Source: Macrostomum lignano
Taxonomy: Eukaryota
DNA length: 64,000 nt
NCBI GenBank assembly: GCA_002269645.1
Contig: NIVC01000166.1
Location: 186,001 to 250,000, forward strand
Direction: 5' to 3'
The translations under genes were made by a program, and so were the position numbers. Every line of letters starts with the position of its first letter. Within the stretch, counting starts at the first letter, position 1. The notes below the pieces were generated by a model. The model did no database searches, was not told where the DNA came from, and saw only the letters and a program-made list of their open reading frames with translations. Below are positions 2,478 through 55,223 of this stretch, piece by piece.

Positions 2478-3530
2478 TCAAACGCATCTTCGACTAGCGC
2501 ATCGCTTGAGGCCTATGAAATCTTCTACAGACTTGTGTTTTCCTGGCTCTTTCCACTGCTGATGCTGTTCGGAACCTGGGGAAATTTCTCCTGCCTGCTG
2601 GTGCTGTTAAAGAGGCCCAAGTGCTTTCCACTCTCAGTGAGGCTCAGCATGCTCATCTGTTGCGTTATCGATTTTTTACTAGTCTCTGTCAAGTCAGTGA
2701 CGCACTATCTATCCCCCAACGTGATGGGAACCATTCTAATGGTGCACGACTACAGAAAGAACACGAGCCACTTTGTGTGCATCGTTTATTACGCCGTCAC
2801 CTTCTGGCTGCTGCACGGCAGTCCCTTCATCCGGCTGGGGCTGTGCTTTCACTCGCTGGCGGTCACGCTGGCCCCGCTAAGGCAGGCCAGTCTGCTTCGG
2901 AAGCGGAATGTGATCATCTACCAGCTAGTGCTGCTCCTGCTCAGCTTTGTGCCATGCATCCGGGTAGCCAGCTCGTTCTGGTCCACCAGATCAGACCGTT
3001 GTCTGTTCCGCAACGATTCAATTGAAGTTTTCTATCGGATTTTCACTGTTTTTGTGAGCAGACTTTTTGTTGTCTGCTGTCTGCTGGTTACGCTGCTGAT
3101 TATCTTGATTAGCATGAGGCGCACGAGGCAACAACTTGGCGGCTCGGTGGTCTCTGGGGTCAGGAGCGGGCCGCAGACAAAGACTGTCACCAGCATCTTT
3201 GTTTCGACCAGTCTGATCTTTTTTGCTTGCGAAATGCCCTACAATGTGGCCAGGGCCCTGGCCAACCTAGAGCTGGTCAAGGAAAGTGTTTCCATAAAGC
3301 AGACGCTGCTCATGCTAAACAACCTGCTGTACCTGAATCCGGCGCTAAACTGGATGCCCTACCTGATTGGCCGCAAGTTTCGACGCTTGTACACCGAGTT
3401 TTACAGCTGCAACAAGTGCTGCCGAAGCAGAGCAACCAACGTCCATGGACAGAGACGCGAGCATATTCTGATGCCAGAGAGCTCTGTTCAAAGAAATAAT
3501 CTTGATAATGAGCAGGTGTACACTTACTGA
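2478..3530 (+). CDS. Class A (rhodopsin-like) peptide-type GPCR, divergent; main coding exon
   Basis: ORF 2535-3530 has seven hydrophobic segments: TM1 'LLMLFGTWGN', TM6 'LIFFACEMPY', TM7 'LYLNPALNWMPY'. The frame stays open upstream to an acceptor (ccattccAG, 2476-77), adding SNASSTSASLEAYEIFYRL with an N-glycosylation sequon. The start exon was not located. Confidence 0.75.
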   Translation, partial: SNASSTSASLEAYEIFYRLVFSWLFPLLMLFGTWGNFSCLLVLLKRPKCFPLSVRLSMLICCVIDFLLVSVKSVTHYLSPNVMGTILMVHDYRKNTSHFVCIVYYAVTFWLLHGSPFIRLGLCFHSLAVTLAPLRQASLLRKRNVIIYQLVLLLLSFVPCIRVASSFWSTRSDRCLFRNDSIEVFYRIFTVFVSRLFVVCCLLVTLLIILISMRRTRQQLGGSVVSGVRSGPQTKTVTSIFVSTSLIFFACEMPYNVARALANLELVKESVSIKQTLLMLNNLLYLNPALNWMPYLIGRKFRRLYTEFYSCNKCCRSRATNVHGQRREHILMPESSVQRNNLDNEQVYTY

Positions 3531-3893: not shown

Positions 3894-4140
3894 ATTACAC
3901 CTACCCTAATAGGGAGATGTCCAACCGACAACTCAGCCGCAGTTATTGCTGCGCACGGTTGTTCAGTCCAAGGACTGGGGAGTCGCCACACACCCTCAAA
4001 TACCCCAGCTAATGCTGTCACCCATTTTACAGCTGATTGAACTGAAGCAATACAGAGTTAAGTGTCTTGCTCAAGGACACAAATTGTTCCGATTGGGGTC
4101 GAGAATCGAACCCTCGACCTTTCGGTCATGAGTCCGTCCG
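3894..4140 (-). mobile_element. tRNA-derived SINE with CORE-like central domain, 5'-truncated copy
   Basis: Same sequence as the copies at 27774, 39128 and 41415. The reverse strand carries a B-box-like GGTTCGATTCTC and the block gtccttgagcaagacacttaac...cagctgtaaaatggg. Confidence 0.75.
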
Positions 4141-4797
4141 TCTCTGTACATGAGCGAGTACATGATTTCCTTTTCTCTATGTCTCCCGCCAAACTTGCGC
4201 GATCCCCCCTTCTCACCCAGTCTTCTCACCCACATTTTTCACTGTTATTACTTCTATTTCTACGATTTCACCTACAGTGTACATGCACTCACCCACTCTT
4301 TCCCCAACTGCTCACGCAACTCCCCTATTGTTGGCTCTCTTTCCCCGCCGCATACTATTTTCTTCCGTTATATTACTCTAAGTACACATCTTCATACATT
4401 GTCCTCCCTAATCCTTCCTAAGTTTCTACGTCGTAGTTGGTTCGCACAGCCTTGCACACCCCATTTGCACATTTTTTATCTACTGTTCAACCCGTTACTT
4501 TCCTATTTCCTGGTTTGCTCCTTTGTTCTCTGACCCTCTATCTCTACCGGACCCCCGAATTGCGTCACTGTCTACTCGAATGCGCCCACCTCCCTCCAAA
4601 TCTTCATTCTCCCTCATTTACGAGCGTATCACGGGTGACCCGAAAGATAAAATTTTTTTTAGAAACAGGTCAGTGACGTCAGAAGACCGGGGCCGATCAG
4701 AAAGAGGGAATCATGGCAACGACCTTTGAGAGCATCTCGTGACCAACTAAACACCTTTTGAACACCAATGAAAGTATGCGTAAGGAAGTCTAAAAAC

Positions 4798-5160
4798 CTG
4801 CCTACTGATCACCCTGATGGTGATTCTGGCTAGTGTGAAGGGCACCCGCAAGCAGCTGGGTGGCTCGGTCACCACATACGGAGGTTCACGACTTGGCTGT
4901 CAGACAAAGATCGTGACAAAAATCTTTGGCTCGAACGGCCTCATCTTCTTTGCTTGTGAGAGTCCTTACAGCATTATGAGAGCCCTGGTCAACCTGAATA
5001 CCGTAGAGGAAAGTGAAGAACTATTCGATATATGTTGTTCTCATGAATATGCTCTGGTGTACCTCAATTCCGTGCTATACTGGCTAACTCTTACCTCATC
5101 GGAATAAATTTTCGTCAGAAGTACTTGGAAATATATCGCTGCGAAAAATGTCATCATTGA
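4798..5160 (+). pseudogene. Partial, frameshifted paralogue of the upstream GPCR (TM5-C-terminus)
   Basis: 'ILASVKGTRKQLGGSV...QTKIVTKIF...LIFFACESPY' aligns with 'ILISMRRTRQQLGGSV...QTKTVTSIF...LIFFACEMPY'. After a frameshift near 5090 another frame reads YLIGINFRQKYLEIYRCEKC, matching YLIGRKFRRLYTEFYSCNKC. No N-terminal half is seen. Confidence 0.8.
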
Positions 5161-6143
5161 TAGTTTATTTTTGGAACTCTGAATACTACTTCAGATAATT
5201 CTAGAATAGGAAACTGACGTAAAAACTTGTATCTCCAGCGCATTTTTGGTGAATAGAAATGATTTCTAATGTAGGAAACAATTTCGAAAAATACGCAAAA
5301 TCGTCTGCCGTATTTAAAACAAAACATTTAAATCAGATAAAAGTAAGTAAGTTTCATAGGCGAGCTGACGATACTCATAGGCGAGCTGACGATATAGCAA
5401 GAGGCGCATGCAGTGCAAGATGTCAGGAAACAAAATAGTACATAACGAGCTACTTCATAGAAGGTGAAAAGGTTCGTATTGTCAGTGGCATTCATTTTGA
5501 AATAGCTATAAGCAAAACGAGAAACGAGTTAAAGCGCGATCAAAGTTAGTGCACCACGAAAGCAAAAGCACTATAATAGTTTTTATAGTAATTACGATGC
5601 TCTCGATTGAAGCACGAGGGTCTTTTGATGAATGAAAACAGTAGCACTTAATTCAAAATTACGTAGCTTCATTCATTTGTAGCTAGAAAAATTCCATAAT
5701 CACTTCTTGACAAATAGGTAAAGGATACAGAATAATAAAAAGCCTCTCGAGGTTAACAGGCGTCACATCGTCGACAGGTGTGAGCCACGTGCCAAAAAGT
5801 CACTGACATTAAGCAATTTAGCAGATACTCAGTCGTTTAAGTCATTTTCATAGTTTCAATCATTGCTGATTTAAAGATAGAGCGAAAGAGCTTTGACAAT
5901 TTCACAAAAACTTCTTTGCAAGTGACACTTAATTACTGAATAAATATAAATTGGCTGCTTTTATTGTTTGCAAACATGCAGAAAACTTAGTCTTTCCTTA
6001 GAGCTAGCCATGTCTAATAAAAAATAATGATGTCAAGACGTCATAATTATGAGTTCACCTATCTGTAGGTAGCAGAAAGTAGTTAAAAATTAGCATAAAG
6101 ATGTCTAATTAGTTATTTTACAATCACACAGTTTCGAAGAGGT

Positions 6144-9100
6144 CTATCGTAGAGGTGGAAACCTCAGTCTTTTCCTATTTGTCGATCGGTAGCACGCGAT
6201 CGTCCTGTTTTCATTGGTTGCTGCTGTGGTGTGCGATGCGAACGGCAACACTGACATCAGGTCGTCGTTCATCAAATCGAACTGGTTAATAAGTATGTTG
6301 CACAGCGTCGGAATGAATCTTCCAGAACACATGCTCCCTTTGACAACACTATGGATGTACAGACAGTCCTCATGTTGACCTACGTTTAGGTCGCCGACGC
6401 TTCGAGCCTCTGTTCGCGCCTGAACATTGCCTCGGTTTGCTTGAACAATAAAAACCTTGGGCTTGTTTTTCAGCTGCGGGCACATTCTGAACTGTTTGTA
6501 CACATTTTTCAGTGAGACGCGACTTCCGTCAGCTGAGTAAACGTAGCCCTGCTCTCCGTGCGACAGGATGCAAAGAACAAGGGCGTCCTCCTCAGCGTAC
6601 TCTTCTGGCTGCCGGTCAATCGTCAGGAGGTGACCGAAGGTCTCATGAGACGGGTTATTCAAGCTGAGGACGTCGAAGCCTAGCCGACTAAAGCAAATAT
6701 AAAATCTATCGTCCATGAGAGATCGCGGTGGAAGATTTGTCTCTGGTGGAAAATTAGTGACTTGTATTAGGATGGCTCTTCCGCGACGTGCACTTTGCAT
6801 CGGATAGTACGGAGAAGAATCTGGATCGTCTGGACCACCGCCATCATCGCCACCACCGCCACCACCTCCACCACCACCACCGCCACCATCGCCACCACCA
6901 CCACCGCCACCATCGCCACCACCACCACCGCCATCTCCGCCGTGGCCGTTGCCTCTGTCGCTTGGCTCCTCCACAGGAGAGTTGGATGGATCGCCGCTCT
7001 CTTCAGGTTGGTAGCCGCAGCCGGTTTCGCTATCAATACTTAATCCACTTTCGCTTCCTTCGCTTGTTGGAGCGCGCTGTAATCTAAAATTATAATATTT
7101 TTATTGCCTGTGTTTGAATACTAATCCAAAGTAACTACGAGATCAATATGCAATAGCAAATAACTTACATCAAGCGTGAACAGTTGAGGTGACCCGAAAA
7201 CTTCGCCCATTGATAAGCGTTCATATTCCTCTCTCCGGTCAGGCGCCAATAGTTCGCGTCTTTCATCAACTCTCCGAATATTTCAATGACCTCGATGTGC
7301 CCGCAGCGAGCAGCCCAGATCAGAGGTGTGTTGCCGAAGAAATCTTTCAGCCATAAATTTGCTCCGAAGTCACACAACATTTTGAAAGTTCCTGCGTGTC
7401 CCTTTTTCGCTGCGTGGACGGCAGCTGAGTATTTAAACACGTCCTGAAAAACAATTAGCATTTTCTTAGGGTTTCATTCATACCAAAAAGGTTTAAATTT
7501 TTAACCTCACCTGGCAATCTATATCAGCTTGCATTTTGATGAGCTGCTCCAAAACAGATTTCTGGTCATTTATGGCCGCCAGAATCAGAGGGGTTTGTCG
7601 AAGATTATTTTCTCTATTTACTTCTGTCGTCATAGTGCTGGCGTTGTTTCTCAATATTTTCTCAAACGCTATCAGGACTTCTTTGTGGCCTTTGAGGGCG
7701 GCCCACGAAATGGCTGTCCGGCCCATTACATCCTGGACACTGACCAGGGATGTGTCAGAATTTCTATTGAGCAGCGATAGTACCAGGTCATGTTTGCCTC
7801 TGGCGGATGCGATTGTTAGCAGAGTCTGATTCAAAATCCCAAACTTCTGGGCTGTATTCTCCTGAGATCTGCACAGGGCTGCAAGCTGCGCGTCCGACCA
7901 CTTATCCGGGGACGCAGAGCTGAATATCCTAATTTGTGATGCGATAGATGGATGTAATGGATGTGATACGAGTATCTTTCACTTTTGATAGCCCCAGATG
8001 TATAGCATTTTATTTGTCTATCTAATAAAATAACAATTAAAACATCAAATGGAATTTTATTATCAATGGTTGCTAATAAAGTTTGTACTTAAGAGATTAA
8101 AGCAGTGGTATCTGCGGATGTCTAAAACCAAGAAACAGTGACAATAACTTACTGCACATCGTCAGATGCAGCGCTATTTAAGAAGAATTTCTTGGTCAGA
8201 CTGGTGACTGCAGAAGCTTCAGTACCGAATTTTTCGGATCCACCTTTCATCTCGGGCATGCCCAGCCGCCTGTTCACCTCTGCCACCACGTTCACAATGT
8301 GCTCTTTGTTGAATTTTTCCTCTTGAACGACGGAGCATAGAACCTCAGCAAGCGATCCATTCTCTCCTAGTGAGCCACCGCGGCAGAGAAGAAAGTCTTT
8401 CTCAGGAATTTTAAACGACGTCTCTTCCAGCGGGCAGGCGTTCAGGGTTTCAGGCTGCTGCTCAGTCTGAACAAAGAAGATCTTCGGTTTGCCCTTTAGA
8501 AAGGAGCACTGGTTAACTCGGAACCTGGCCACGATGTCTCTTACTTCGACCTCTTCACCGTCGCTAGCGAAGAAGCTGGCACCGGTCCCGTGTCCGATGA
8601 TGAAGCACACGAAGCTGCCCATGTCGCGGAGATCGGACCTGACTATTTTGTTGACCGCTGCAAAGATGTCAGCGCTAGTAGGCTTACTTGTGCATGGTTG
8701 GATTGTAAAACCAAGGTTTTCGAAGGTGTCGGTAATTCTTTTAACTTCCTTCTGTTGATTGTGGCTTGAGCTGCGATTGTAGGTCTCGACACTTATTACC
8801 AAGCACAGGCCTTTTGCCGTAATGCTCTCTGCGTATATGTCGCTTTCCGGCTTGTTTGAAGTTGAACTAAATGAAAATGTGCAAAATAGATTTCCATATA
8901 TTTTCACCACAATGATTCGAAAGATTCAAATTTTAGCAAAGATTTGTGTGAAGCTGACTTACGCGACAACTTGCTCTTCGCCAATCCTAACATGCGAATG
9001 AGCCCCATCAAACTGTAGCTCATGTTCCTCTTGGCCTTCCGTTTCAAACGCAGGAACCTTGCACGTCAGTCCTCCTTGTTCTGGTTTAGAAAAATATTTA

Positions 9101-10358
9101 AGTTAGTACTAGATGTACGTCACCTGGTGCCAGTGGCCAAAATGCCAGGTCAATTCGATATTCAAGCCTTGTACGAGCTAGAAAGCCAGAAAAGTTAGGA
9201 ATCGAAAAGTCGGGAAAAACATGCATGTGATTGCTTTACCTTGATCATAAATGAGAGGATGCTTCATCAATTCGATAGCCAGCATCCGGTCACTCGGTTG
9301 TTTTTCAGTGCATTTGTTATAGAAATCTTTCAGATTAGCCGAGCAACTTTCCGGAAGCACTGGAGCCCCCTGCCGTTCCACCCGGCGAACAATGGCCAGC
9401 ATGTTCTTGCACTCCCAGTAGGGCCGTTTGGCGATCACCATCTGGTAGATCACGCAGCCGAACGCCCACACATCGGAGGCGCAGCTATAGGGAGGGTCCT
9501 CGGTCTCAGAAGACAGGAACATCTCAGGCGCCATGAAGTGCGGGTCGCCTCTCTCCCCAGTGGACGGATGCTCCGTTACTGTTTGGAGAATCTGGATGGC
9601 CAGACCGAAATTGACGATCACAATTCGATCGCCCGGACAAACGAGCACCGTCTTGCAGTTGATGTTGCGGTGAATCACCGGATCGTTGAGGCCGTGCAAA
9701 TATGAAAGGGCGTCGCATATCTGAAATCAGTCGGTGATTCAGGATTTTAATATCGTTGTTTAAATAAGAATAGTGTAAGAAAGCAGCCGAACACGTTTTT
9801 AAAATAATTGCCAATTTTTACTGTTAATTTTCTTATCCGCGTTTAAATAAGTGGTCATGGACTTCTTAGTGAAGTCGTGTATTTTTCTATTAGCTCATTA
9901 GCTCGTAGAAGTCATTAAGACCCTTCGAGTACCCTTCAAGCCCTGGCTGGGTTCATGGCAAAAAAAACTTTTGATAATGTACAATTTTGCAATTATTTAT
10001 TACGCACCTGTCTTGTAAGATTACAAATGCTCTTCTCCGGCAAGCCTTGTTGGGCGGTGATATGCCGTTCCAGAGTTACCGGTCCCGAAAGCAAGCTCAT
10101 CTGTACGGTCACGCACATCTGCTCCTTGTCCACCATGATGCGTTTGAATTTGACCACGTTTTTGTGATCCAATGCACACAGTTTCTTAGCCTCTTTGTCG
10201 CAAGCCTTAGTCAGAGTTTCTAGCTTATCATGAGCTCCAGCTTCGACAAGATGCCATGGCAGGCGGATTTGTTTTACAGCCTGCAGTTGCTCTGCCTCGC
10301 CCACCGCTTCGGCGTAAGTTTCGCCTCGATCGCCTCTCGATAGAAGCTCCCGGACCAT
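6144..10358 (-). CDS. Pseudokinase - caspase-like - 6x ankyrin - Gly-rich - caspase-like fusion protein (1095 aa), 7 exons
   Basis: Exons 10358-10008, 9720-9240, 9080-8963, 8866-8153, 7919-7511, 7443-7169, 7083-6144. All introns are GT-AG with phases 0,1,2,2,0,2, joining into one 3288-nt frame. Kinase motifs: AVK, HRN, NFG, APE, DVWAFG. Caspase motifs: IGHG/KPKIFFVQTEQ and LSHG/KPKVFIVQANRG. Ankyrin example: TPLIWAARCGH. Confidence 0.85.
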
Positions 10359-11635
10359 TGCTTGGCTTAGGGGAGAGTTTCAAAACAGTGTTTTACAGCT
10401 TCATGTGAGCTTCAAATTTACCTGCAATTTTTTGCTAGTGCAGTTAATGTTTAACTGCAGTGTCTCTGCTTAGCCGTAAGAAAGTGGCAAGGCTTTTTAA
10501 AAGCTGTCTAGCTATAGTGTCATTGGTAGCAAGCTTACTCTGCCAAATAGAGGCTTGTTTCTCTTGCCATTATAATACCTTATCTGTCTTTTCTCTTTTC
10601 TACCCCTATTTTTGTAGCGCTGTCCAATAATATTTGGTTCTGTATGAAGAATTAAGTACAGTCTAGACAAGTACTTGCGTTGTAGGGTATAGACTGGGAG
10701 AGAAGTAATCTGGGGGAGGGTTAATGTACATTAAGTACAGCACATTGCTGTCAGGCAGCATTCTGGAGAGTTTTACACACTGCTTTGCATATCAAATTGA
10801 AAAGAAAAGAAAAATAGTACAGCAAGAGTTGCATTTCATACCCATTTGTGCAAATGTTGTCTCTTGGCTCTCATGCCATTTTATAGCCAGCAATTCTTAG
10901 AACCTGATCTCGTAGCATGGAGGCTTAAAACCAACTGGTTTGTAGTTAGAAATTTGGTACCTTATTCTACTGTACAGCGCTTTCCGCTTAGCTAGCTAGT
11001 GCAGCCAGTCCCTATCTGTCCTATTTTAGAAAAAAACAGTCATTTGGTATATGAATAATAGCTAATTTCTCACTTAATAGTAGCTATATGTGAGTTCGCT
11101 ATTGGTAATTTCAACTAGCGGCCGTTGCTCACAGAAGCTAGTTGCAAACTTTTTTTGCCTGTAAAAAACTGTTGAAACATAACAACTAGTGAGAATTAAA
11201 CAATCGCAAGTGCGACTGTTTGTGGCTTAAATACAAGGTAAGAAGCTTCACGACAAGTGCTTATTTGCTAATCGTACCAGCTTTTGTAGTTTCAAGCGAC
11301 ATGTAGCCCCTGTCAGTGACTCCAGGGGGAGGCGTGGCGGGCCACATCATCCACGCCGAGTCACACTGCCCACAGGCGGAGTAGGAGGTGCTGCTGCTAG
11401 CGCTGCAAACGGGGAGGACAGACATGGGCTCGGCGCTTGTTAAACTGCCTTCTGGCAGTTTAACCGCGCACGCTCAAGCCTTCACACACGCTCTGTGACG
11501 TGACGCTGCATGATACTGTTTTATTATCGTGTATGCATATAGGCTATCTGGGGTTAAATAATTATCCTATCTGTCGCTTTGTCCGAAGATATTTACGTTG
11601 GCAAAAGACCGCAACCAATTTTCCTTTACTTCAGC
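10359..11635. promoter_or_regulatory. Shared divergent (bidirectional) upstream region with probable non-coding first exons
   Basis: 1.28 kb separates two outward-facing ATGs. The + ATG sits 2 nt after an acceptor (tttacttcAG, 11633-34), and a candidate donor AAG/gtaaga lies near 11238. Promoter activity is inferred from the layout only. Confidence 0.5.
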
Positions 11636-14600
11636 ATGGTCAAAAACTACTCAATCGGGGAACAGATCGGTCGAGGCGAGTTTGCTAGTGTCCATGCCGT
11701 CACCATCAAGGACCGGAGCCCAACAGCCACTTGTGTAAAGCTGATCAAACTGCCAACGAACTCTGAGCAAGTCTTAGACAAAAAAGAGCTCACTGAATTG
11801 GTAGAAAAACACAAGCCACTCAGAGAACTGAAACACCGGAACTTGGTTCAAATTGAAGACCTTCATGTCATTCAACAAGACTACTCTATCGCAGTGTTCA
11901 TGGAGCGGTTTCAAGGAAAAACATTGGAATATTTACTGAAAACGAAGGGTGCCATCACCCAAGAAGATAAGATTCGGCACTACTCCAAGCAGGTGAGCAC
12001 TGCATGGATTTCTATGACGTGTTAATTCACAAGCCCCATAACCAAACAGTCTCTGACTTATTTCTAATTAATTAGTTGGTTTTTTATTTAATTAAGCACA
12101 ATTCTCAACTTCTCTGCAGATCTGTGAAGCTTTGAAGTATCTCCACCACGACTTAAAGGACCTCGTCATTCACAGAAACATCTGCAGTAAAACAGTTATG
12201 ATAGACGACAACGATTTAGTTAAGTTAATTGACTTTGGCATATCCATTCAGCTGATGGATGCGGTGAGCCATCAGGTGACGCAGTGTCCGAGAGGCCACC
12301 CGAACTACATGGCTCCAGAGTTGTTCTTGGAGGAATCCAGCTCTAAATTCCAGAGCCTCTACAGTCGGGGCTCAGACATCTGGGCTTTCGGTTGCGTTGT
12401 GTACGAGATGACCACTGGTGCGAAGCCGCTTGGAGATTGCAAAAATATGCTGGCCATAGTTAACAAAATCAAATATCACGGAGCTCCAAACCTACCGGAG
12501 GCGAGCTCTGAGCAGCTGAGAGACTTCTATAAAGGCTGCATGAGAATGAATAGGAAAGAGAGAATGTCGGCAGCAGATCTGCTACGACACGAGTTTCTCA
12601 GTCCTGGTATGCAATTTTATGGTTTTTTGAGCTACATGTATATTTTTCACTGTTTTTTGGCTAGTTGTTACCTAATATAAGCTCTCTTTTAGTATATGAC
12701 AAACACTGGGACAATGTCCGTCTGCTGAGCAGAGGAGGCTTCGCAGAAATTCACGAGGCTCTCACGGACAAGGGTATCCGTTGCGCCGTAAAAACTCTGA
12801 AGCTGCCCCTTCAACTCGGTGATCAACGTGACAAAGTGCAGAGAGAAACCGATCGAGCTATTGAAAGCGAGATGAACCTGTGCAGATTACGGCATGACAA
12901 CATCGTAAAGATCTTTGACATTGTGCAGCCAGAAATTGCCACGGTTGTTGTGTTCATGGAGCTGCTGGATGGCAAAACTTTGGAATTGGTGATAGATGGA
13001 AAACCACTGGATGAGGGAATGATTCGTCTTTTCGCTTCACAAGTAAGCATGAATACTGAGTTGAATAATCAGGTTTGCTCATTATCCTGATCGCATTACT
13101 TTTGTTTACTCATATTTCAGATCTGCAGCGCACTTAGCTACATGCACAATCAACCAGAAAAATCAGCCGTGATTCACAGAGACCTCAACTGCTCAAATAT
13201 CGTGATTCTAGATGATAACAAAGTCAAGTTGATTGATTTTGGCTTATCGCACAGGCTAGGATCGTCGATTAGTCACAGCACCGCCTCGTCAGTGAAGGGC
13301 ACGCTGAACTTCATGGCGCCGGAGCTACTGGGTGACGACGAAAAAATTGTGTACAGCACAGCATCAGATGTCTGGGCATTCGGTTGCGCCGTCTACCAGA
13401 TGGCCACTGGAGAGCGGCCGTTCGAGAAAATTAAAAACCTAAATCGTCTTATTCGCACTCTGAAAGAGCAAGGCGCCCCATTATTGCCAGATTCTTGTTC
13501 GAGTCTGCTGAAAGATTTCTATGCCAGTTGCGTTATGCGCCAGCGCTCGGAGAGGGCGTCCGCTATAACGTTGATGAAGCACGAGTTTCTGACTTTCAAG
13601 TAAGTCTGCTTGCATTTTGTCTATTAAAGTTCATATTTTTGTATCAACGATGGCTCTGTATTTTTGTACTTTTAGTCGAGCATATTGTTTCTTTTAATTC
13701 CTTTAATTAGAGCCTCGGAGTACGAGGATGAAGACCGATACGAATCCAGTGCTAGCCAGAAAGGAATGTGCGCAATCATTGACATGCTCCCATCTGGCTC
13801 GGACTCAAAACTCTCTGCTAAAATCAGCAAAAGTTTAGAAAAGTTCGATTTCATCGTCAAGTCGCTACCAGACGCAACCTGTCAAACCGCTTGGAGCTTC
13901 ATCGGGGACATCGCAAACAGTCAAGAGCTTGCAGACTCGAAATGCTTTGTTTGTTTTGTTATAGCTTCCGGTTCGAACGGACAACTGTACTCAGCTGACA
14001 ATGATGAGAGCATTGAAATCAGAGATCTGCTTGCCAGGTTTCGCTCTAGCCAGTGTCCCAGTCTGAAGGACAAGCCGAAGCTTTTCTTCATTCAGGCCGC
14101 GCAACCGGCCAGTGCAGCCGCCGGCTTGGACGAATCCACGACGCGAATTCGAGACGATGACTTTCTGGTTTGCATCAACGATGCCGACCTGGATTCATCG
14201 TTTGTCGGGATATTGTGCACTGTTTTAGAAGAGGACAAATTTAGCGACCTAGACATTGAAGGAGTTGTGGATGTGGTGAACGATCGCCTAAAACTGGAAC
14301 CGTTGGTTAAAGCGAAAAACCGGGCACTTAAATCCATGTCGGAAGCAGTTTCCACTTTGACGAAGAAATTTTACCTGAAGCCGGAACGGGTGAAACCGGA
14401 TCCCAGGTGAGCTTTTTCGTTGTTTTAGAGGCTTATTGAGAAGAATGCACAAAAATTAGCTAAATCAGCAACACTAATTTCTGGTATTCGAGGAGCACTT
14501 CATCCTGCAGACAAACAAGTTTCCAGTACCACCACCGAATTAACCTACTTTGTAACCTACTATTATTAACCTACTTTAACCTACTTTATTAGGTTAAAGT

Positions 14601-17547
14601 AGGTTAGGTTAGGTTAAAGTAGGTTAATATTAACCTACTTTAACCTACTCAATGAAACGATTGGGCCCGATGATGCCATTTTGATCACTTCCACCACAAG
14701 AGCTTTATTTAAAACAGTTGTTTAGTGAATAGGATCGAGGGATTTCTTATTCTTCCCATTGATTCATAATGTTTAGCAGAGAAAGATAACGAATATTTCA
14801 GAGCGGAGTCGCCAGAAAAGTGGGACGATATACAATTGAAGAGGCTAATAGAGGAGGAGGCAAGTCAATGCGCGAACCCGGACTTCACCAGCAAAAAGTA
14901 CGGCCCGTTGGGACAGACGCTGCTGTCAATCGCAGCTGACAAGGAAAGCAGCGAGTTAGTCAAGCTTGCGCTCCAGACAGCGACCACTGTTCCATCCATT
15001 CACTCGGATCTCGATGTGATGGGCAGGACGGCCCTTTCCTGCGCCGCAGCCAAAGGATCAGACGCGGTTCTGGCCGCTTTCGAGCAGGCATTCATCGATG
15101 CGGCCGATGTTCAGAAATCAGTGGTTAACGAAGCCAACTATATGCGCCAAACTCCTATCATTGTGGCAGCCAAGCAAAACAGGACGAATGTTCTCGAGAA
15201 GTTGGTCCGGATGGGAGCGTATATCAATCAGAAGGTGAGGCTGTGTTGATACCCACTAGTTTTACTCAACTATCACAAAAATGTCCTATCAACTCTGAAT
15301 CACAAAAACAGACAGAGACAGAAAGAAACAATGCATGATAGAACCCAAAGGCTGATTCAGTTCAAGAAGCAACTTTATCGCCTTTATCAAAGAGCTCAGG
15401 AACTTATACAGCGCAGACACATCCGCCCGGCCTCTGCACGACCAAGCATGATGTTCTCTTTTACTGCCTCGATGACGGCCTTCTTAAAGCTATTGAGATG
15501 AAACAAATACGTTTGCGTTTTTGCGATTGCCTATTTGCTTTCAGGTTGAGATTTTAGGAATTTTGAGACGCTTTAGTCCCGGTTCCGTCAGCAAGCTCTA
15601 CTGCAGCATGGCCGGTTCCAAGGACCAGGCTGCCAAAATTTAATTTTCAAAACAGTCGATTCTGTTTCGAAGTGTAGAACCCTTTTGCACTTTTTCCGTA
15701 TTTCAAGCACCTGGCAGGCAATTCGAATTCTTCCGATCAACTTGCTGGCTTCATGCTGCTCACATAATCCTTATCCAGATGCATCTTGCGGCAAAACGTT
15801 TGAAGGGTTTTAACTCTGGGTCTATAGTCGTCTGATCTGTATGACCTTTAACATTTGTAAACATTAGATATTTGGCTACAAGTGGCCACTGGACAGTTAG
15901 TGTTTATGACGTATGGCGTCTCTACGCTCGTACATTTCATTATATTTGAGTTCGTACAAATTCTGCACATGCAGCTTATATATGAATTTACATTTCAGGA
16001 TATTGTAGAAGCCACCGCATTGATCTACGCGGCTAAATTCGGATTTGTTGACGCGGTGCGCAAGCTGCTGGAACTCGGCGCCGATGCTGCTCTCGCAGAC
16101 CGTTCGGATCAAACACCGCTAATTTGGGCAGCTCGCTGTGGCCACACCGATGTTATCAACGCTCTATCTGAAAAGCTCAATAGTCTGGAGCTCTGGAACC
16201 ACAGGAGCACGCGGTTGCGCAACTTAACCGCGCTTGAATGGGCTAAGCTCTGCGGCCATGACGCCACTGCGGACAGGATTCAGCAGATGTAAGTAATTGG
16301 CGACGTAATTTTTGTTCCAATGGCTGAAAGCTCTGTAGAAATCTGCACCTCCTGCTTTCATGGGCGTAAGAAATTGGCCGTCACGAGGGTCCTCCCTTTC
16401 CACCAGACCATTTAAAGTTTTTTTCGTGAATATCCCCTAAGCTAGTAAACTTTTTTCCTGTCTTGAACCCTCACAATGACACGCATTAAGCCATCCATGA
16501 TCCTGTTAAGCCGTTAAGAAGAAGTTTTTAATCATTTAAATATTTTAAATGATCGATGCAAACTATTTCAGAATTCAACAGATAACCGGAGCGACACAGG
16601 AGGCGGAAGCCACTACCGACCCACAATCAAGGGGTGGCGGTGGCGGTGGTGACGGTCCCAGTAGTGAAGCGACAGGAACTTCCGCCGGAGGAAGCGGCGG
16701 CGGAGCCGTTGGTGGAGGAGGTGGTGCTGATGAAGTTGGTGGAAGGGGTGCCGGTGGCGGAGGTGCCGGTGGCGGAGGTGGCAGTGGCAGTGGTGCCGGT
16801 GGCGGAGGTGCCGGTGGCGGAGGTGGTGGTGGCGGAGGTGGTGGTGGCTGGCCTATTTACCATATGAACAGCCCAGTCAGAGGCCTAGCAATAGTTATCA
16901 GTCGGAACACGATTCCACCAAATGCAGGTTTTCAGAACATACATTGGGTGCCGGATCAGCAGACTCAATCTTTTGTCGGTTGTTTAAGCGACCTACGCTT
17001 CGATTTCTTAGTGCTACCAAATATTCCGAGAAACCTTTATTATAATCTCCGAACCACGGTACTCAATTGGCCGACGTATACCATCTCTGATTCTCTTCTC
17101 CTCTGCCTGATGTCTTATGGCGAACACGGCCGAGTGTATGACTGCAATGGAGAGCGTGTTGAGCTGGAAACAATGTTTCGACAGTTCAGAGAGTGTCCGC
17201 TGCTCTCTGGTAAGCCGAAAATATTCATGGTCGATGCTGGTCGCGACATTCCTCATGAGAGACTGGTGTTGGAGCAGGCAATTCAGGAGAACGCGGGCCA
17301 GCACCAGGACTGTATTTACATTTACAGTGTTGTAAAAGGAAACGCCTGCTACCAAGAGGTAGAGAACGGCTTTTGCTTCATGCAGTCCATGGTGAATTTA
17401 CTGCGCTGGCCAAGTTTCGATTCAGCCACTGAAGATTTTGCGTCCTTTCTGACGAAAGTCGTCAGCGACGTGTCGAACAAGTGCACAGCAAAGCAGATTG
17501 TCTGCCACACGAGCACCTTGCAGCGTCATATCATTTTTGGAAATTAA
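11636..17547 (+). CDS. Pseudokinase - kinase - caspase-like - 6x ankyrin - Gly-rich - caspase-like fusion protein (1355 aa), 8 exons
   Basis: Exons 11636-11992, 12120-12606, 12693-13042, 13121-13599, 13711-14406, 14802-15234, 15999-16288, 16572-17547. All introns are GT-AG with phases 0,1,0,2,2,0,2, giving one 4068-nt frame. Kinase 1 has HRNICSKT/DFG. Kinase 2 has AVK/HRDLNCSN/DFG/APE. Caspase motifs: IASG/KPKLFFIQAAQ and MSYG/KPKIFMVDAGR. Confidence 0.87.
14540..14650. repeat. Short AACCTACTTT / AAAGTAGGTT direct and inverted repeat cluster in an intron
   Basis: The motif repeats about 7 times forward and about 3 times as reverse complement. Confidence 0.7.
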
Positions 17548-18709: not shown

Positions 18710-19161
18710 CAGTGGCGTATACTCGAGAATTTTATTTGCAGGATTTGCAACATTACAGAGACCAGTATTTGGTCTCTAGGTTAATACCTCGATCGCTTGT
18801 TGGGCGCCCCTGTCTCTTGGTGGGTGCCCCTGTCTCTTGGTGGGCGCCCCTGTCTCTTGGTGGGCGCCCCTGTCTCTTGGTGGGCGCCCCTGTCTCTTGG
18901 TGGGCGCCCCTGTCTCTTGGTGGGCGCCCCTGTCTCTTGGTGGGCGCCCCTGTCTCTTGGTGGGCGCCCCTGTCTCTTGGTGGGCGCCCCTGTCTCTTGG
19001 TGGGCGCCCCTGATCTCTTCTAACAAGAGAAGGTAATTAAACACGAGCCCCTCTGTCATTCGTCAAGCTCGCGGTTACCTCTTATTTAGTTTCTTAGGGA
19101 TTACAATTATTATAAGGGGCAATTGGGGGGGCACCTCCACCCTAAGCTGCGTACGCCACTG
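18710..19161. mobile_element. Non-autonomous hAT-type element (MITE) with an internal 20-bp minisatellite
   Basis: TIRs CAGTGGCGTA (18710) and TACGCCACTG (19161). A perfect 8-bp TSD, AGACATGT, lies on both sides. Internal array (TGGGCGCCCCTGTCTCTTGG)n spans about 18797-19012. Confidence 0.9.
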
Positions 19162-20132: not shown

Positions 20133-23100
20133 TGATGTGTTTGGAAATGAAATCGTAGTGTTTTTTCGTAAAGTAATTTGTATATTTATTTTCACTCCGA
20201 AGAGTGGAATCGTAGGCAAGCGCAGTTCTGAGAAAACAAAGTTCGTCTGGGCCGTCTCTCTTTCTAGAGAGCAAACGTTAGGAGGTTAGGCCATAGATGT
20301 GCTTCAACTAAACCACACATCATCTTCCCCCTCCTCAAGAGAGTCTCATTCTTATAGTTCTTCGATTAGCCGTCTTGGGGGTATGCCTTTATTCATTCGA
20401 CCAGATCGCCGGGCTTGCGGGTGCTGGACCCTTGTGGTGGGCTCCAGGTCAATGTCGACCGTCGACGCCTGGGCCGGCCTGAAGGGAACCAGGTTCCGTG
20501 CAGTCCAAACTTTTCCATTGTCGAGGCGATAGGTGAATCTGCCCAAAACTTCTTGAATGAGGAAGGGTGACGTAAATGGTGATTTGCCTTTCGGCACATG
20601 TGGGAGTCGGATGCGCACCATGTCGCCCAGTTTGAAATGTTGCCGAGTACTCGTTCCCGCTCCAGTTGCTTGCGGGTCGCTAGAATCGCAGCTCTTTAGC
20701 TCCTCCGCAATTGGCTTCTCAATTTCTAGTTTACGGGGCTGAAACTTTGTTCGGATATCCCGCCCTAGCAGCAGTCGTGCTGGTGAGTCGCCGTCTTCGT
20801 TAGGCGTCGTCCGATAGCTGCAGATGACTTGCTGCATTCCCTCTTCGAAGCTTCTCTTATCCGTTTCAAAGGTTTGCGCAGCATGCTTAAGTGTCCGGTT
20901 AAAAACTTCTACTTTACCATTTCTTCTTGGCTCATATAGCGGAACGCAGTCATGCCTGATGTCGCGCGAGGCGAGGAAGTTTTTCATTTCAGTGGAGACG
21001 AAGCTGCTTCCATTGTCGGACACCAGGACATCCGGGTTTCCAAAACGGTCGAATGTTTCCGTCAGCCACTTGATAATCTTCGCCGATCTGATGTCTCCAG
21101 TCAGGAGAATTTCTGGGTAGGACGAGTAGTAGTCTATCAAGGCAACAATAAATCGCTGAGTTTGAGGAGCTATCGCGAATGGGCCAGAGATGTCGATTGC
21201 CAGCTTTGACCACGGGCGCTCAGGCTTTTGTATAGAATTCCCGTCTGGTACAATGACTCTATGGGACTTTGCGCTGTCCTGACAAGCTAGGCAATGCTTG
21301 ACGTAGTTATTGATCGCTCTGTCCATACCTGGCCACCAGTAAGCAGATCGCAGGAGACGCTTCATCCTCACAATGCCGGGGTGTCCTTCATGCGCGCGTT
21401 TTAGTATTTGCGGTTGTAGTTTAGAAGGCGGCACAATTTGTTCGCCACGAAATAAAATGTTCTTGTCAATCGTCAGTTCATCCTGGACTTGTCGAAAGGC
21501 ACTAGCTTCCGATCGTTTGTCGATAGGTCTGGAGAGTCGCGTAGCTTCCATTACAATCTGCAATAGCTCATCGGTCTTCGTCAGTTCTTGCAAGTTCTGC
21601 ATATTTATGTTAATTGCACTGCTGACTGCAAGGATGCTCTTGACCATATTTTCGTTGTCCATATCGACATCTCTTATTCCGTCGTTAATGGGGAGCCGCG
21701 AAAGGGCATCAGCCACCTTGTTGGTGCTTCCTGGCTTGTAGATAATATCGTAACTGAATTCGGACAGTCTTACAAGCCAGCGAGTGAATTTAGCTGATTT
21801 TGTCTTATTAGTGTGGTGTCGAAGAAGACTTGTGAGCGCTGAATGATCGGTCTGCAGGGTGAACTGCCGTCCAAGCAGATATTTGGCAAAATGCTCACAT
21901 GCCCAGACGCAAGCGAGGGCTTCGCGCTCGTTCACTGCGTAGTTTCGTTCCCTATCAGACAGTGTGTGTGACGCGAAAGAGATAGGTACTTCGTTACCAT
22001 TCGGCTGTCGTTGCGAAAGGACCGCTCCTATTCCAACATCTGATGCGTCTGTTGTCAGGATCGTCGGCAAGTTTGGGTCAAAAATAGCCAGTTCAAGGCG
22101 TTCGTGGAGCAGCGACTTCACTCGTTCGAAGGCTTTTTACTGCTTTTCTCCCCAGATAAACCTCTGGTGCTTTCTTGTCAACATTCGTAGGGGCTCTGTA
22201 ACGTTAGCCAAGCCTGGCAGGAAGTTCGAATGGTAGTTGATCAATCCAAGGAAGGATCGAAGTTCTTCGGAATTCTTCGGTGCCGGTGTATTCTTGATAG
22301 CCTCTAGCTTCGCGGGGTCGGACTCGACGTTCCCAAGTTCGTTGATAATGTAGCCAAGGAAAGGCACTCGTTCTTTTCGGAGTATTGACTTGGCGGTGTT
22401 GATTCGGAAGTCTTTTTCGTGCAGCAACTTCAGAACCTTCCTTAGTTCTTCGTCGTGCTCCGCGATGGTCTTTCCGAAAACGAGAATATCGTCAATGTAT
22501 GCAATCGTGTGATCACAACCAACTAGTGTGTTGCTAACGCATCGTTGAAATACGGATGCGGAGTCCACCAAGCCCATTGGCAGTCTATTGTAGGCATAGA
22601 GTCCGATCGGGGTTGCAGTTGTGGTTAAATGCTTGCTTTCTTTGTCCAGCTCAATGTGGAAGTAGGCGCGCTTTAAATCAATCTTAGACTTGTAGCGGGC
22701 GCCTCGGAGCTTCAGAAAGAGGTCGTTGATGTTTGGTACGGGGTACCGGTCAGGGACTACAAACTTGTTCAGGTGCGACAGGTCAGTTGTAATCCGTACG
22801 CTTCCGTCGGCTTTCCACACGGTAACCAAACCGTTGACCCACGAACTTTTCTCGATTGGGCTCCAGATTCCGCATTCCTCCATTTGCTTGATCTCTGTGA
22901 TGGCAGCCTCTTGGCGGGCAAACGGAATTGTCCTAGTGGGGATGCACTTGGGAATTGCATCAGAGCGAATTGTAATTTTATGTGTGTGGTCCGGGAAGGT
23001 TCCCAGTGACTCCTCGGACAACTTAGGAAATTGTTTTTTGACCTCGCTGAATTGGTCAGAAATGGCTGAAACCTGCATCGATGATCCGTCGAACTTCAGT

Positions 23101-24558
23101 CCCAGGAAGTTGATGAGATCCAGTCCGACAATTGCTTTCAGGCGATCCTGCGTGACGAACAAATTCGCTTCGACTGAACGATCTAGGAGCCTCACATTTG
23201 CTGTGATACAACCAAGGACGTCCGATATGCTAGAGTTGTCGTAATTCACAAGAGAAGAGGATATCGGCTTGATTTTGCACTCTGGCCAAATGCGCTTGAG
23301 GTCGGACTTTCGGATAGTCGATACTTCGGCAGCCGTGTCGAGAAGAGCGCTGTAGCTGCCTCTCTTGCCTACAAGGGTGACTTCGACGGACGGCGCCTCG
23401 TGTCTGCTGACCAGTCTCACCTTCTCGCGGACATGGTTGACGCTCTTCTTCTGGGTTCTCCTCTGGGATATTATACACTGCGCTGCAAAATGGTTAGGTT
23501 TGCCACATCCTTTGCACAATTTTCCAAGGGCTGGACACTTTGGGTCACGATAGAGATGAGTGTTGGATCCGCAACCCATGCACTGCTTATTATGTTGTTT
23601 TCCCTTGTCAAAGCGTGCGGGTGGGGCACCGGCATCTGCTTTCCGTCGACGTGGCGGCCCACTTTTAGAGCTCGGCTGGCTTTGCACTTGCTGAACTGGG
23701 GCTGGAGCGCCGCTTCGGATTATCTGGCCGGTCTCGGTGGCTGCTTCATCGGCCCGCATAGCGGTCAGAAACGTCTGCAGATCGATGGCTTGCTCAGTTA
23801 ATAGCTTCTCCTGGGTGCTCTTTGACGCGCAGCCGATGACAAGCTGCATTGCCAGTTGGCGGTCTTCGCCGGCTCCGTACTCGCAGTCCGTGATTAGCGT
23901 GCGAAGGGCAGTAAAGTAGTCATTTACCGACTCGCCCGTTTCTTGCTTGCGGCGTCGAAACTCATATTCGGCTCGGACGGGGTTTTTCGCCGTGAAAATA
24001 TTGGCTTCAGCTCATCGACATACTCTGTGAAGCTGGAGTTCTCTTTGTCCTTCACGCAGTGTGCGTAGAGAATTCGTCTTCCTTCAGACCCCAAAGACGT
24101 ACGCAGAAATGCTTTCTTAAAAGCCTCCGAGAGCTGTGTGCCTGTTGTCGTCTCTGTAAGGTAGTAGAAATCCGATACCTCTCTTTGCCAGATGTCCCAC
24201 TTGGTTGTCGGATCGCCAGGTAGCTCCAGAAACTTGGACGGTTGTGGTATTGAGACGCGGATTGCTTGGTGATTCGTCGTCGAGGCCAATGGTTCTTGGC
24301 TCGTATTCGGCTTTCCTACCGACGGTGGCGTCTTTGGCGGCATCGGTTCGCAAATCCTCGTCGCCAATTGATGTGTTTGGAAATGAAATCGTAGTGTTTT
24401 TTCGTAAAGTAATTTGTATATTTATTTTCACTCCGAAGAGTGGAATCGTAGGCAAGCGCAGTTCTGAGAAAACAAAGTTCGTCTGGGCCGTCTCTCTTTC
24501 TAGAGAGCAAACGTTAGGAGGTTAGGCCATAGATGTGCTTCGACTAAACCACACATCA
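20133..24558 (-). mobile_element. Full-length Ty3/Gypsy LTR retrotransposon, Mag-like
   Basis: 190-bp LTRs at 20133-20322 and 24369-24558 with TGATGTGT...ACACATCA ends and one mismatch seen. 5-bp TSD ATATC. PBS TGGCGACGAGGAT matches a tRNA-Ser(GCU)-type 3' end. PPT is GAGGAGGGGGAAGA. Two Gag CCHC knuckles; domain order PR-RT-RH-IN. Confidence 0.95.
20352..24343 (-). pseudogene. gag-pol of the LTR element, with one frameshift (~23995) and one in-frame TAA (22139-22137)
   Basis: Motifs: protease LLDTAA, RT YIDDIL, RNase H TTDAS, integrase HHCC and D-D-E (AIDIS, VSDNG, KVEVFN). Changing frame near 23995 restores 'TAKNPVRAEYEFRRRKQETGES'. The frame continues in phase after the stop (KAFERVKSLL). 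Confidence 0.9.
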
Positions 24559-31300: not shown

Positions 31301-32001
31301 CCCACCTGTGAATCTCACCCAACCTCACCTGAGAATCTCACCCAACCCCTATCCTCCCAGCCGAGACCCGGAAGCTGATGGTGCGGGCCTTCAAGCAGAC
31401 TCTGCAACAGTCGCAGATTCGCCAGCTAAACGAGGCCATCTCCCAGGATCCCAAGCTGATCAGCCTAAGCGGCATGTCTCCATCCCGGCTGCCCGAACTG
31501 GTTGAGCACAATCCCCTGGTTGCTATCGAGGTGCTGCTCACCTTGATGAAGGCCAGCTCGCCCCAAGTCACAGACTATTTCTCTGTCCTAGTGAACATGG
31601 AGATGTCCCTGCACAGCATGGAGGTTGTCAACCGCCTGACAACCAGTGTTGAACTGCCTGCGGAGTTCATCCACCTGTACATCAGCAACTGCATATCGTC
31701 GTGCGAGTCAACCAAGGACAAGTACATGCAGAACAGGCTGGTCAGGCTGGTGTGCGTGTTCCTGCAGTCGCTGATCCGCAATAAGATTATTGACGTCAAG
31801 AATATCTACATCGAGGTGCAGGCTTTCTGCATCGAGTTCAACCGCATCCGGGAGGCTGCTGGCTTGTTCCGGCTGCTAAAATCCTTGGAGTCCAGCGATG
31901 GCAGCGTCGACTCCGCCGCCGCTTCTGCCGCTCTGGCTGCTGGCGGCGGCGGCCCGGGTTCGAATCCGCCTAGCGCCGCCACCACGCCTTCGAAGCCGTA
32001 G
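28312..32001 (+). CDS. CNOT11: CCR4-NOT subunit 11 (C2orf29-like); first coding exon not located
   Basis: Exons 28312-28417, 29632-29907, 30527-30917 and 31361-32001 join in frame. They read [18 protein letters not shown]...ALYLLWE...NPF, ELLKKTP, DELVWM...QWDASMC and [13 protein letters not shown]...[14 protein letters not shown]...[21 protein letters not shown]...FCIEF, all recognisable CNOT11 motifs. Confidence 0.93.
28485..29575. repeat. G-rich purine satellite (GGAGGTGGTGAAG / GGAGGTGGGTGAA variants) in a CNOT11 intron
   Basis: Directly visible; the + strand is almost free of C for about 1.1 kb. Confidence 0.95.
30015..30500. repeat. 21-bp satellite (AAACCATAAATCATCATTCAG) in a CNOT11 intron
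   Basis: More than 20 tandem units visible. Confidence 0.95.
30985..31350. repeat. 23-bp satellite (CTGAGAATCTCACCCAACCCCAT) in a CNOT11 intron
   Basis: About 15 tandem units visible. Confidence 0.95.
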
Positions 32002-34826: not shown

Positions 34827-34881
34827 GAGCATACAAACAAAAACGAATTGGCACAGTTTCGCTTGCACAGCCAGTCGGCAG

Positions 34882-55207: not shown

Positions 55208-55223
55208 AATATTAAAATAAAAA

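Follow-up and report, generated by a model that had tools for sequence, protein, structure and literature searches.

A head-to-head pair of Macrostomum lignano genes, probable flatworm ANK caspases, in which no caspase fold carries the catalytic cysteine

A 64,000-nucleotide stretch of the Macrostomum lignano genome (assembly GCA_002269645.1, contig NIVC01000166.1, positions 186,001 to 250,000 of the forward strand; hereafter the window, in whose numbering positions are given) contains two paralogous multi-domain genes that lie back-to-back and are transcribed divergently. They are called PLUS and MINUS after their strands. Taken together, it is very probable that both genes are real and selectively constrained and that a near-identical second copy of the locus bears transcript-derived models of them. 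Among the ANK caspases of flatworms, whose pro-domain is an ankyrin array (ANK), they probably make up a branch specific to Macrostomum. In this branch, a kinase-like domain and a degenerate caspase fold precede the ankyrin array. Every caspase fold of the window pair lacks the catalytic cysteine; therefore, the proteins are probably regulators rather than cell-death proteases. The preferred interpretation, to which a probability of about 0.45 is assigned, is that both would be non-proteolytic regulators or scaffolds of catalytically live paralogs, comparable in their mode of action to cFLIP.

The six-frame open reading frames (ORFs) at 6.1–17.5 kb form two series, one per strand. The plus-strand series encodes, in order, Pkinase (four pieces that make up two domains), Peptidase_C14, Ank (two pieces), and Peptidase_C14, and the minus-strand series encodes Pkinase (two pieces), Peptidase_C14, Ank (two pieces), and Peptidase_C14. 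All the pieces of both series match Pfam families, with E values from 8e-5 to 8e-32. The gene models were rebuilt independently by enumerating all frame-keeping GT-AG introns between neighbouring ORF pieces and choosing consensus splice sites, which resulted in 13 GT-AG introns for the two genes together. An earlier, sequence-only reading of this DNA had proposed two long spliced proteins of 1355 and 1095 residues with GT-AG introns throughout, and the rebuilt models have the same lengths. They also bear out its claims of a shared domain order, shared intron positions, and divergent transcription from a 1.28-kb spacer, which measures 1277 bp between the two ATGs. The main parts of the locus are as follows, with domain activities predicted from sequence.

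11636-17547, plus strand: coding sequence of the PLUS gene; 8 exons, 1355 amino acids (aa); pseudokinase K1, kinase K2, pseudocaspase, ankyrin repeats, Gly-rich linker, pseudocaspase
11636-11992, 12120-12606, 12693-13042, 13121-13599, 13711-14406, 14802-15234, 15999-16288, 16572-17547, plus strand: exons of the PLUS gene
6144-10358, minus strand: coding sequence of the MINUS gene; 7 exons, 1095 aa; pseudokinase, linker mini-exon, pseudocaspase, ankyrin repeats, poly-Gly linker, pseudocaspase
10358-10008, 9720-9240, 9080-8963, 8866-8153, 7919-7511, 7443-7169, 7083-6144, minus strand: exons of the MINUS gene
10359-11635, no strand: divergent intergenic spacer; 1277 bp from one start codon to the other
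8963-9080, minus strand: linker mini-exon of the MINUS gene; 118 nucleotides (nt), between phase-1 and phase-2 introns; present in the database protein P0122
14802-15234 and 15999-16288, plus strand: ankyrin-repeat region of the PLUS gene (exons 6-7); ~230 aa, roughly seven repeats; Pfam Ank_2 E 2e-11 and 8e-13
7919-7511 and 7443-7169 (7169-7919), minus strand: ankyrin-repeat region of the MINUS gene (exons 5-6); Pfam Ank_2 E 2.5e-11 and 5.8e-10

The introns of the PLUS gene have phases 0, 1, 0, 2, 2, 0, and 2. The two paralogs share the junctions within each kinase domain at 'Q|IC' (phase 0), at the kinase end (phase 1), before the middle caspase fold (phase 2), between the caspase fold and the ankyrin repeats (phase 2), inside the ankyrin repeats (phase 0), and between the ankyrin repeats and the linker (phase 2). 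The same intron positions recur in a second pair of M. lignano genes, P0179 and P0005. The mini-exon 9080-8963 of the MINUS gene was recognised only through P0122. For the caspase-to-ankyrin intron of the MINUS gene, there is a choice between AG acceptors at 7929 and 7920, a distance of 9 nt. The one at 7929, taken in P0122 and in the GenBank model, adds three residues (QIF), and the alignment of the paralogs fits 7920. The donors of the last introns of both genes read AT|GTAAGT (7165-7170 and 16286-16294), so that an unspliced transcript ends at once in Met-stop. Such ends are present in the UniRef proteins P0121 and P0122 and could be either an annotation artefact or a real short isoform without the C-terminal pseudocaspase. 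The linkers ahead of the C-terminal caspase folds are encoded by microsatellite-like (GGN)n repeats of 40–60 Gly codons (6834-6933 and 16739-16848). The repeat of the MINUS gene has the same length in both copies of the locus described below, and the second gene pair has Ser/Pro/Gly-rich linkers in place of (GGN)n.

The best protein matches of both window proteins are all from M. lignano. P0001 and the PLUS protein are 97% identical, and the segments matched in P0001 stop at the first six predicted exon boundaries; P0121 and P0122 are 97% identical to the MINUS protein. A profile search with the C-terminal caspase returned P0152, a GenBank partial protein of 243 aa that corresponds to the last MINUS exon on another copy of the locus. 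The contig of P0152 led to that copy, L001 (GCA_002269645.1, NIVC01000006.1), which is collinear with the window at 93–98% nucleotide identity and therefore represents a second copy of the locus in a partly duplicated genome. The predicted mini-exon differs between the two copies by one substitution and no indels. For the GenBank annotation of the NIVC assembly, genome-guided RNA-seq and transcriptome assemblies were the sole sources, and TransDecoder called the ORFs (Wudarski et al. 2017, PMC5730564). The genes called on L001 begin at both predicted ATGs and encode a PLUS homologue of 1356 aa and a MINUS homologue of 846 aa. The 1356-aa protein was matched to the PLUS model by start position and length only; this length is unreachable without the last PLUS exon (~1030 aa otherwise), so the annotated homologue includes it. 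When the MINUS exon model is placed on L001 and truncated at position 9973, where the annotated gene ends, it gives exactly 846 residues, and the six MINUS introns on L001 sum to 879 nt, as the annotation implies. Therefore, the transcript-based model crosses the ankyrin-to-linker intron. The 846-aa and 243-aa pieces on L001 lie in the same frame, 27 nt apart inside (GGN)n, with no stop between them, and their separation suggests that the transcript assembly broke there, not that one gene ends and another begins.

It is highly improbable that the two series are separate kinase, caspase, ankyrin, and caspase genes, or pseudogene fragments, that only seem to splice together. Such an artefact would account for the inconsistency of the public models at the last intron and in (GGN)n and for donors at which an unspliced transcript terminates. 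However, the transcript-based models give the same introns, the full-length GenBank model of P0179 and the UniRef model of P0005 hold the whole architecture with intron positions identical in the four paralogs, the two MINUS pieces on L001 share one uninterrupted frame, and no predicted exon contains an indel relative to the second copy. The refuting outcomes that the sequence-only reading had named, transcripts ending between the domains among them, for the most part do not overturn it.

Selection on the genes was assessed by aligning positions 4507-15450 of the window with L001. There are no indels in 6090 exon columns, in contrast to 15 indel events in 1861 intron columns; at the intron rate, 49 exon indels would be expected, and the probability of finding none is ~5e-22. 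The 940 bp of MINUS exon 7 are likewise free of indels between the copies. The copies differ by substitutions at 1.5–1.7% of exon, 2.4–2.9% of intron, 2.0% of spacer, and 5.1% of 3'-flank positions. Neither copy has a disrupted reading frame, and the ratio of non-synonymous to synonymous substitution rates (dN/dS) is 0.32 (Nei-Gojobori; 45 synonymous and 51 non-synonymous changes; binomial P = 1e-7). The absence of exon indels, the intact frames, and the low dN/dS show that the genes are not decaying pseudogenes. A lack of expression together with a dN/dS near 1, which had been put forward as an outcome that would overturn the earlier proposal, is contradicted by this value and by the transcript-based gene models.

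Each of the two proteins contains two caspase folds, one in the middle of the chain and one at the C-terminus.

13711-14406, plus strand: predicted middle pseudocaspase of the PLUS gene (exon 5); Pfam Peptidase_C14 E 3e-18; Ser at the His position, Ala at the Cys position (QAAQP); L3 loop shortened
16572-17547, plus strand: PLUS exon 8; Gly/Ala/Ser-rich linker (about 16572-16860, (GGN)n) and predicted C-terminal pseudocaspase, Pfam E 4.6e-17
Within 16572-17547, plus strand: active site of the predicted PLUS C-terminal pseudocaspase; Tyr at the His position, Gly at the Cys position (DAGRD)
8153-8866, minus strand: predicted middle pseudocaspase of the MINUS gene; Pfam E 4e-22; His kept (GHG), Glu at the Cys position (QTEQQ); L3 loop shortened
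6144-7083, minus strand: MINUS exon 7; acidic/poly-Gly linker and predicted C-terminal pseudocaspase, Pfam E 1.6e-17; His kept (SHG), Asn at the Cys position (QANRG)

All four domains have the caspase/haemoglobinase fold according to Pfam Peptidase_C14, which is corroborated by PDB matches for the two MINUS domains and by an AlphaFold2 model for one PLUS domain. The best PDB sequence matches of the MINUS middle fold are caspase-3/6/7 and caspase-8 (E 7e-16), and that of the MINUS C-terminal fold is caspase-2, with 'fivQAnRG' aligned with 'ffiQAcRG'. The PLUS C-terminal fold is the most degenerate; its AlphaFold2 model has a predicted local distance difference test score (pLDDT) of 83 and a predicted template-modelling (TM) score (pTM) of 0.84, and a Foldseek search with it returned caspase-8, -3, and -7 as the best matches (TM 0.80–0.84, E 1e-19). 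An affinity to paracaspases or metacaspases was ruled out because the PDB matches are true caspases.

Active-site residues were assigned from alignment A1 to human caspase-3 and to a limpet caspase-3. In this alignment the catalytic Cys is absent from all four folds, and none of them has the catalytic His-Cys dyad (SHG ... QACxG). The Asp-binding S1 pocket, formed by Arg64, Gln161, and Arg207 of caspase-3, is also incomplete throughout the pair. The MINUS C-terminal fold keeps the first Arg and the Gln, and the L3 segment with the second Arg is deleted; the PLUS C-terminal fold has His, Asp, and Gln at the three positions; and both middle folds have a shortened L3 segment and no second Arg. 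The paralog P0005 has the Gln and the second Arg in alignment and an Arg near the first position. Judged by these residues, the caspase folds of the window pair are predicted to be pseudocaspases that cannot be proteases, in agreement with the non-proteolytic role previously suggested for them.

In both genes the ankyrin region (Ank_2) lies directly N-terminal to a caspase domain, which is the arrangement that defines ANK caspases. An exhaustive profile search with the C-terminal caspase returned M. lignano proteins first. P0179 (PAA89054.1, 1072 aa) contains a kinase, a pseudocaspase, ankyrin repeats, and a caspase in the same order as the window genes, and the M. lignano ANK caspases P0183, P0194, P0326, P0204, and P0238 were retrieved with it. 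P0179, P0183, P0194, P0204, and P0238 are among the strongest matches in this profile ranking, mostly ahead of single-domain caspases. SHG and QxCR are kept in P0179, P0183, P0194, P0326, P0204, and P0238, and the C-terminal caspase of P0005 keeps SHG and QSCRD. All the M. lignano relatives examined thus retain the C-terminal His and Cys at the sequence level, and the window pair appears to be the exception.

ANK caspases of flatworms have been described together with one M. lignano caspase that has a kinase-like pro-domain and is sister to them (Genome Biol Evol 2024, evae204, PMC11463336). According to that paper, the ANK-caspase clade is sister to the DED caspases, the DED machinery of the extrinsic pathway was lost in flatworms, and ANK caspases are restricted to parasitic flatworms. 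The several ANK caspases of M. lignano correct this last statement. P0179 is probably the kinase-bearing caspase of the paper. The window genes therefore have relatives in a family that is already named, which answers part of the sequence-only reading's claim to an undescribed architecture; the second degenerate caspase fold, the tandem kinases, the dead active sites, and the head-to-head pairing find no mention in the accessible text of PMC11463336. The related claim that no animal protein combines a kinase, caspase folds, and ankyrins does not hold, because such M. lignano proteins are public (P0005 in UniRef and P0179 in GenBank). Outside M. lignano, no protein with both a kinase and a C14 domain is present among the matches listed, and no literature mention of Mlig003293, Mlig030125, Mlig026099, or PAA89054 was found.

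Other domain combinations were met in the course of these searches. The M. lignano protein P0238 (PAA93319.1, 2111 aa) contains a Mab-21/cGAS-like domain, ankyrin repeats, and a live caspase, and a separate M. lignano protein, P0015, contains Mab-21_C, a kinase, and ankyrin repeats; together they point to a wider shuffling of immune- or death-type modules. P0195, a protein model of the jellyfish Sanderia malayensis (EukProt), has the order ANK, caspase, ANK, caspase. Two or more caspase domains occur in about 33 of the 147 best non-query matches (insects, mites, fish), which are either real tandem proteins or merged gene models.

The two genes contain three kinase domains.

11636-11992 and 12120-12606, plus strand: PLUS K1 (exons 1-2), predicted pseudokinase; Pfam Pkinase E 1.5e-10 and 8.4e-27
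12693-13042 and 13121-13599, plus strand: PLUS K2 (exons 3-4), motif-complete kinase; Pfam E 6e-7 and 8e-32; alignment to PLK2
10358-10008 and 9720-9240, minus strand: predicted MINUS pseudokinase (exons 1-2); Pfam Pkinase E 8e-5 and 8.6e-21

In K1, HRD has become HRN and the catalytic-loop Asn has become Thr, but DFG is kept, and the MINUS kinase has HRN, the same Thr, and NFG in place of DFG. K2 is the only kinase domain of the window with the β3 Lys, αC Glu, HRD, catalytic-loop Asn, and DFG. Two of the three domains are therefore predicted pseudokinases, and at most one, K2, is likely to be active; the earlier expectation of a single kinase with the full motif set agrees with these assignments. 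The best PDB sequence matches of the kinase are PLK2, MAP3K5, STK24, and PAK (~1e-24), and no clear family stands out.

The tandem kinases of the PLUS protein did not arise by internal duplication. K2 falls into a different M. lignano kinase subfamily, with an identity of 57% to the P0004 kinases and 52% to the P0007 kinase, in contrast to 41% to K1. This split has 100% bootstrap support, and K1, which has the kinase type proper to the subfamily of the window genes, clusters with the kinases of MINUS, P0005, and P0179, also with 100% bootstrap. The K2 exons total 829 nt, are flanked by introns of phases 1 and 2, and occupy the exact place of the linker mini-exon of the MINUS gene, P0179, and P0005; the flanking phases of the MINUS mini-exon were checked and are the same. 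The junction between K1 and K2, 'SP|VYDKHWD', resembles the tandem-kinase junction of P0004, 'SP|VFRDSWD'. The domain order is ANK, kinase, kinase in P0004 and ANK, kinase, pseudocaspase in P0007. From these features, it is plausible that K2 was gained by exon shuffling.

A second head-to-head pair with the same architecture is located at L003 (NIVC01000166.1:124892-150261), where P0179 is on the plus strand and P0005 on the minus strand. P0179 is a transcript-based full-length GenBank model with the eight-exon layout of the window gene. GenBank annotates only the first 559 aa of P0005 (kinase and C14); however, the UniRef model of 1073 aa maps fully to L003, where the remaining exons, which encode the ankyrin repeats, the linker, and a live-looking caspase, are intact at 5930-3437 on the minus strand. 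The introns of P0179 and P0005 are at the positions of those in the window genes and include those around the mini-exon between the kinase and the middle fold. The C-terminal caspases of P0005 and P0179 keep SHG and QSCRD or QACRG and are, from these motifs, apparently live.

In the tree of the middle fold, MINUS groups with P0005 with 98% bootstrap. Across all domains, 26 quartet-informative sites unite MINUS with P0005 and PLUS with P0179, as opposed to 14 and 15 for the two other arrangements. These sequences are most economically explained by the joint duplication of both genes of an ancestral divergent pair, a point on which the domain trees disagree. The existence of the second pair favours a functional pairing of the partners, but a segmental duplication of the pair would look the same.

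The history of the pair bears on the proposal of the sequence-only reading that the two proteins would be an obligate, co-regulated heterodimer, comparable to plant sensor/helper pairs, in which the ankyrins bind a ligand or effector, the caspase folds dimerise, and K2 signals, without regulation of a proteolytic caspase. This proposal is considered unlikely. It gains from the head-to-head layout at two paralogous loci, which is absent at the single-gene loci; no partner was found within 10 kb at the P0007, P0194, and P0183 loci, the last of these by annotation only. The aligned spacer is also better conserved between the copies than the 3' flank (2.0% and 5.1%, P = 1.5e-5), and exactly one motif-complete kinase domain is present in the pair, gained by the partner of the kinase-dead gene. 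However, if both genes were copied together, as suggested by the quartet counts, their layout is inherited and uninformative on coupling. Furthermore, the spacer is not structurally conserved. L001 contains at 3960-5333 a 1374-bp insertion located 22 bp upstream of the PLUS ATG, and positions 11608-11614 of the window correspond to the empty site. The TG...CA ends of the insertion, its target duplication of 4 bp (GCAA), its terminal direct repeats of ~170 bp, and its internal tandem repeats mark it as a putative small element of the long terminal repeat (LTR) or terminal-repeat retrotransposon in miniature (TRIM) type. The N-terminal extension of the UniRef protein P0001 is the translation of a 5' untranslated exon inside this element. 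The promoter region is thus not structurally fixed, which weakens arguments based on a shared 1.28-kb spacer. The spacers of the window pair and of P0005/P0179 have no sequence in common, and their CpG content is unremarkable.

An alternative in the opposite direction is that the genes are functionally independent members of a lineage-specific expansion, their divergent layout being a relic of an inverted tandem duplication and their dead sites the outcome of sub- or neo-functionalisation or slow decay, without any paired mechanism. M. lignano does have a large shuffled repertoire of kinase, ankyrin, caspase, and Mab-21 combinations, related genes occur singly, the two partners are only about 35–42% identical per domain, and some per-domain dN/dS values are high. 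This alternative is nevertheless doubtful, given the overall purifying selection, the lack of exon indels, and the retention of the layout at two loci after long divergence.

The preferred interpretation, that the proteins are cFLIP-like regulators or scaffolds of live paralogs, draws on the best-understood dead caspase fold. cFLIP-L heterodimerises with live caspase-8 and tunes its activation, and the cFLIP gene adjoins its live paralogs in the genome. Like the window proteins, cFLIP-L has a selectively kept caspase fold without the catalytic Cys. By contrast, it consists of two DED and one pseudocaspase fold, whereas the window proteins have kinase-like domains, ankyrins, and two dead folds per chain, and Pfam detects no DED on any exon of either gene, so that they lack the defining feature of cFLIP. 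The likeness would be one of working and not of membership, and it does not imply homology beyond the caspase fold. By this analogy, the window proteins, unable to cut substrates, would act as pseudo-enzyme regulators or scaffolds, as cFLIP-L does on caspase-8. By way of the caspase dimer interface, the caspase folds of the two proteins could bind one another, or a fold could bind the second one of its own chain; alternatively, the partners could be the live caspase domains of P0005/P0179 and of other ANK caspases. Owing to its flexibility, the Gly linker would bring the middle fold or a partner within range of the C-terminal fold, the pairing would tune activation, and K2 may contribute phosphorylation as an input or output. 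It is only by family membership that a role in regulated cell death or immunity is suggested.

Other known systems resemble parts of the pair. The flatworm ANK caspases described in PMC11463336 share with it the ankyrin array directly upstream of a caspase domain, but the ANK-caspase relatives in M. lignano keep the catalytic Cys that the window pair lacks. JAK JH2-JH1 and plant tandem kinase proteins, like the PLUS protein, have a dead kinase fold followed by a motif-complete kinase; however, PLUS lacks FERM/SH2 or a plant-type context, and K2 is not a duplicate of K1. A Ser/Thr-kinase fold accompanied by ankyrins, in proteins that other domains link to the death machinery, is common to the window genes and to RIPK4/ANKK1 and DAPK1. 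The window kinase, however, has no specific likeness to those of RIPK or DAPK; a death domain is lacking, and nothing in RIPK4/ANKK1 or DAPK1 corresponds to the caspase folds. Plant head-to-head sensor/helper NLR pairs are also paralogous multi-domain genes with a short spacer and one more degenerate partner, but NB-ARC, LRR, and an integrated decoy are missing from the window pair, which limits the likeness to gene arrangement.

It is also conceivable, but quite unlikely, that a two-gene divergent death or immune module, made of kinase-like, pseudocaspase, ankyrin, and caspase domains, evolved in Macrostomum and was duplicated into a live pair (P0005/P0179) and a dead pair, that of the window. 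The dead pair would form mixed complexes with the live one and set its activation threshold via the acquired K2. If true, animals would have their own equivalent of paired sensor/executor receptors, with cFLIP-type control added.

Several observations weigh against the preferred interpretation and the gene models on which it is built. The public models of the two genes conflict at the last intron: P0121 and P0122 stop at 'SRLM*' by reading into it, P0001 is in a different frame when it reaches the Gly region, and in GenBank the MINUS homologue is divided inside (GGN)n into the pieces of 846 and 243 aa. For the MINUS gene of the window itself, there is no database model that crosses (GGN)n without a break, and the continuity of the MINUS transcript through the repeat is therefore derived from frame and length. 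The tree of the C-terminal caspase groups MINUS with PLUS with 89% bootstrap, in conflict with the tree of the middle domain; this may be due to long-branch attraction of two dead domains or to gene conversion. Per-domain dN/dS values are noisy, ranging from 0.16 to 0.86, each based on 3–18 changes, and the highest is that of the MINUS middle caspase region (0.86). Relaxed constraint on a portion of each protein would also fit the loss of catalytic residues. The catalytic-loop Lys is missing from K2 (HRDLNCSN) and likewise from the kinases of P0004, P0005, and P0007, and Thr replaces the catalytic-loop Asn in the subfamily-type kinase of all four paralogs; hence, the presence of one live kinase is not certain. 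Finally, the family was found only in M. lignano.

The catalytically dead caspase folds, the K2 domain from another subfamily at the mini-exon site, and the second head-to-head pair are new here. ANK caspases have undergone a radiation in the free-living model flatworm M. lignano, and in one branch they are fused to kinase-like and pseudocaspase domains and occur in divergent pairs, in live and dead versions as judged from their active-site motifs. Caspase activation is usually explained via CARD or DED recruitment domains. RNAi (RNA interference) and transgenesis both work in M. lignano, and the locus is a genetically tractable entry to the control of ANK caspases, to the origin of pseudo-enzymes beside live paralogs, and to exon shuffling in death and immune proteins.

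The remaining part of the window contains mobile elements, tandem repeats, and fragments of other genes.

53600-64000, further ORFs on the minus strand: Maverick/Polinton-like element; rve integrase at 54170-55207
20352-24367, minus strand: LTR-retrotransposon interior with long open ORFs; reverse transcriptase at 22137-23849, RNase H and integrase at 20352-22121
936-2031, 18796-19019, 28490-31349, 32861-34827, and 47129-47846: satellite/minisatellite arrays with periods of 20–46 bp
2535-3530 and 4817-5107: ORF similar to rhodopsin-type seven-transmembrane (7TM) receptors and a fragmentary second copy, just downstream of the MINUS gene; weak Pfam match, E 2e-4
31378-32001: CNOT11-domain exon, E 4e-52

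The Maverick/Polinton-like element encodes a protein-primed B-family DNA polymerase in two overlapping ORFs, 56909-58627 and 58489-59703, which are probably separated by a frameshift. The LTR-retrotransposon interior includes a possible gag ORF at 23924-24367. The satellite and minisatellite arrays give rise to strong GC-skew (guanine-cytosine skew) spikes in the composition profile and to spurious long repeat ORFs.

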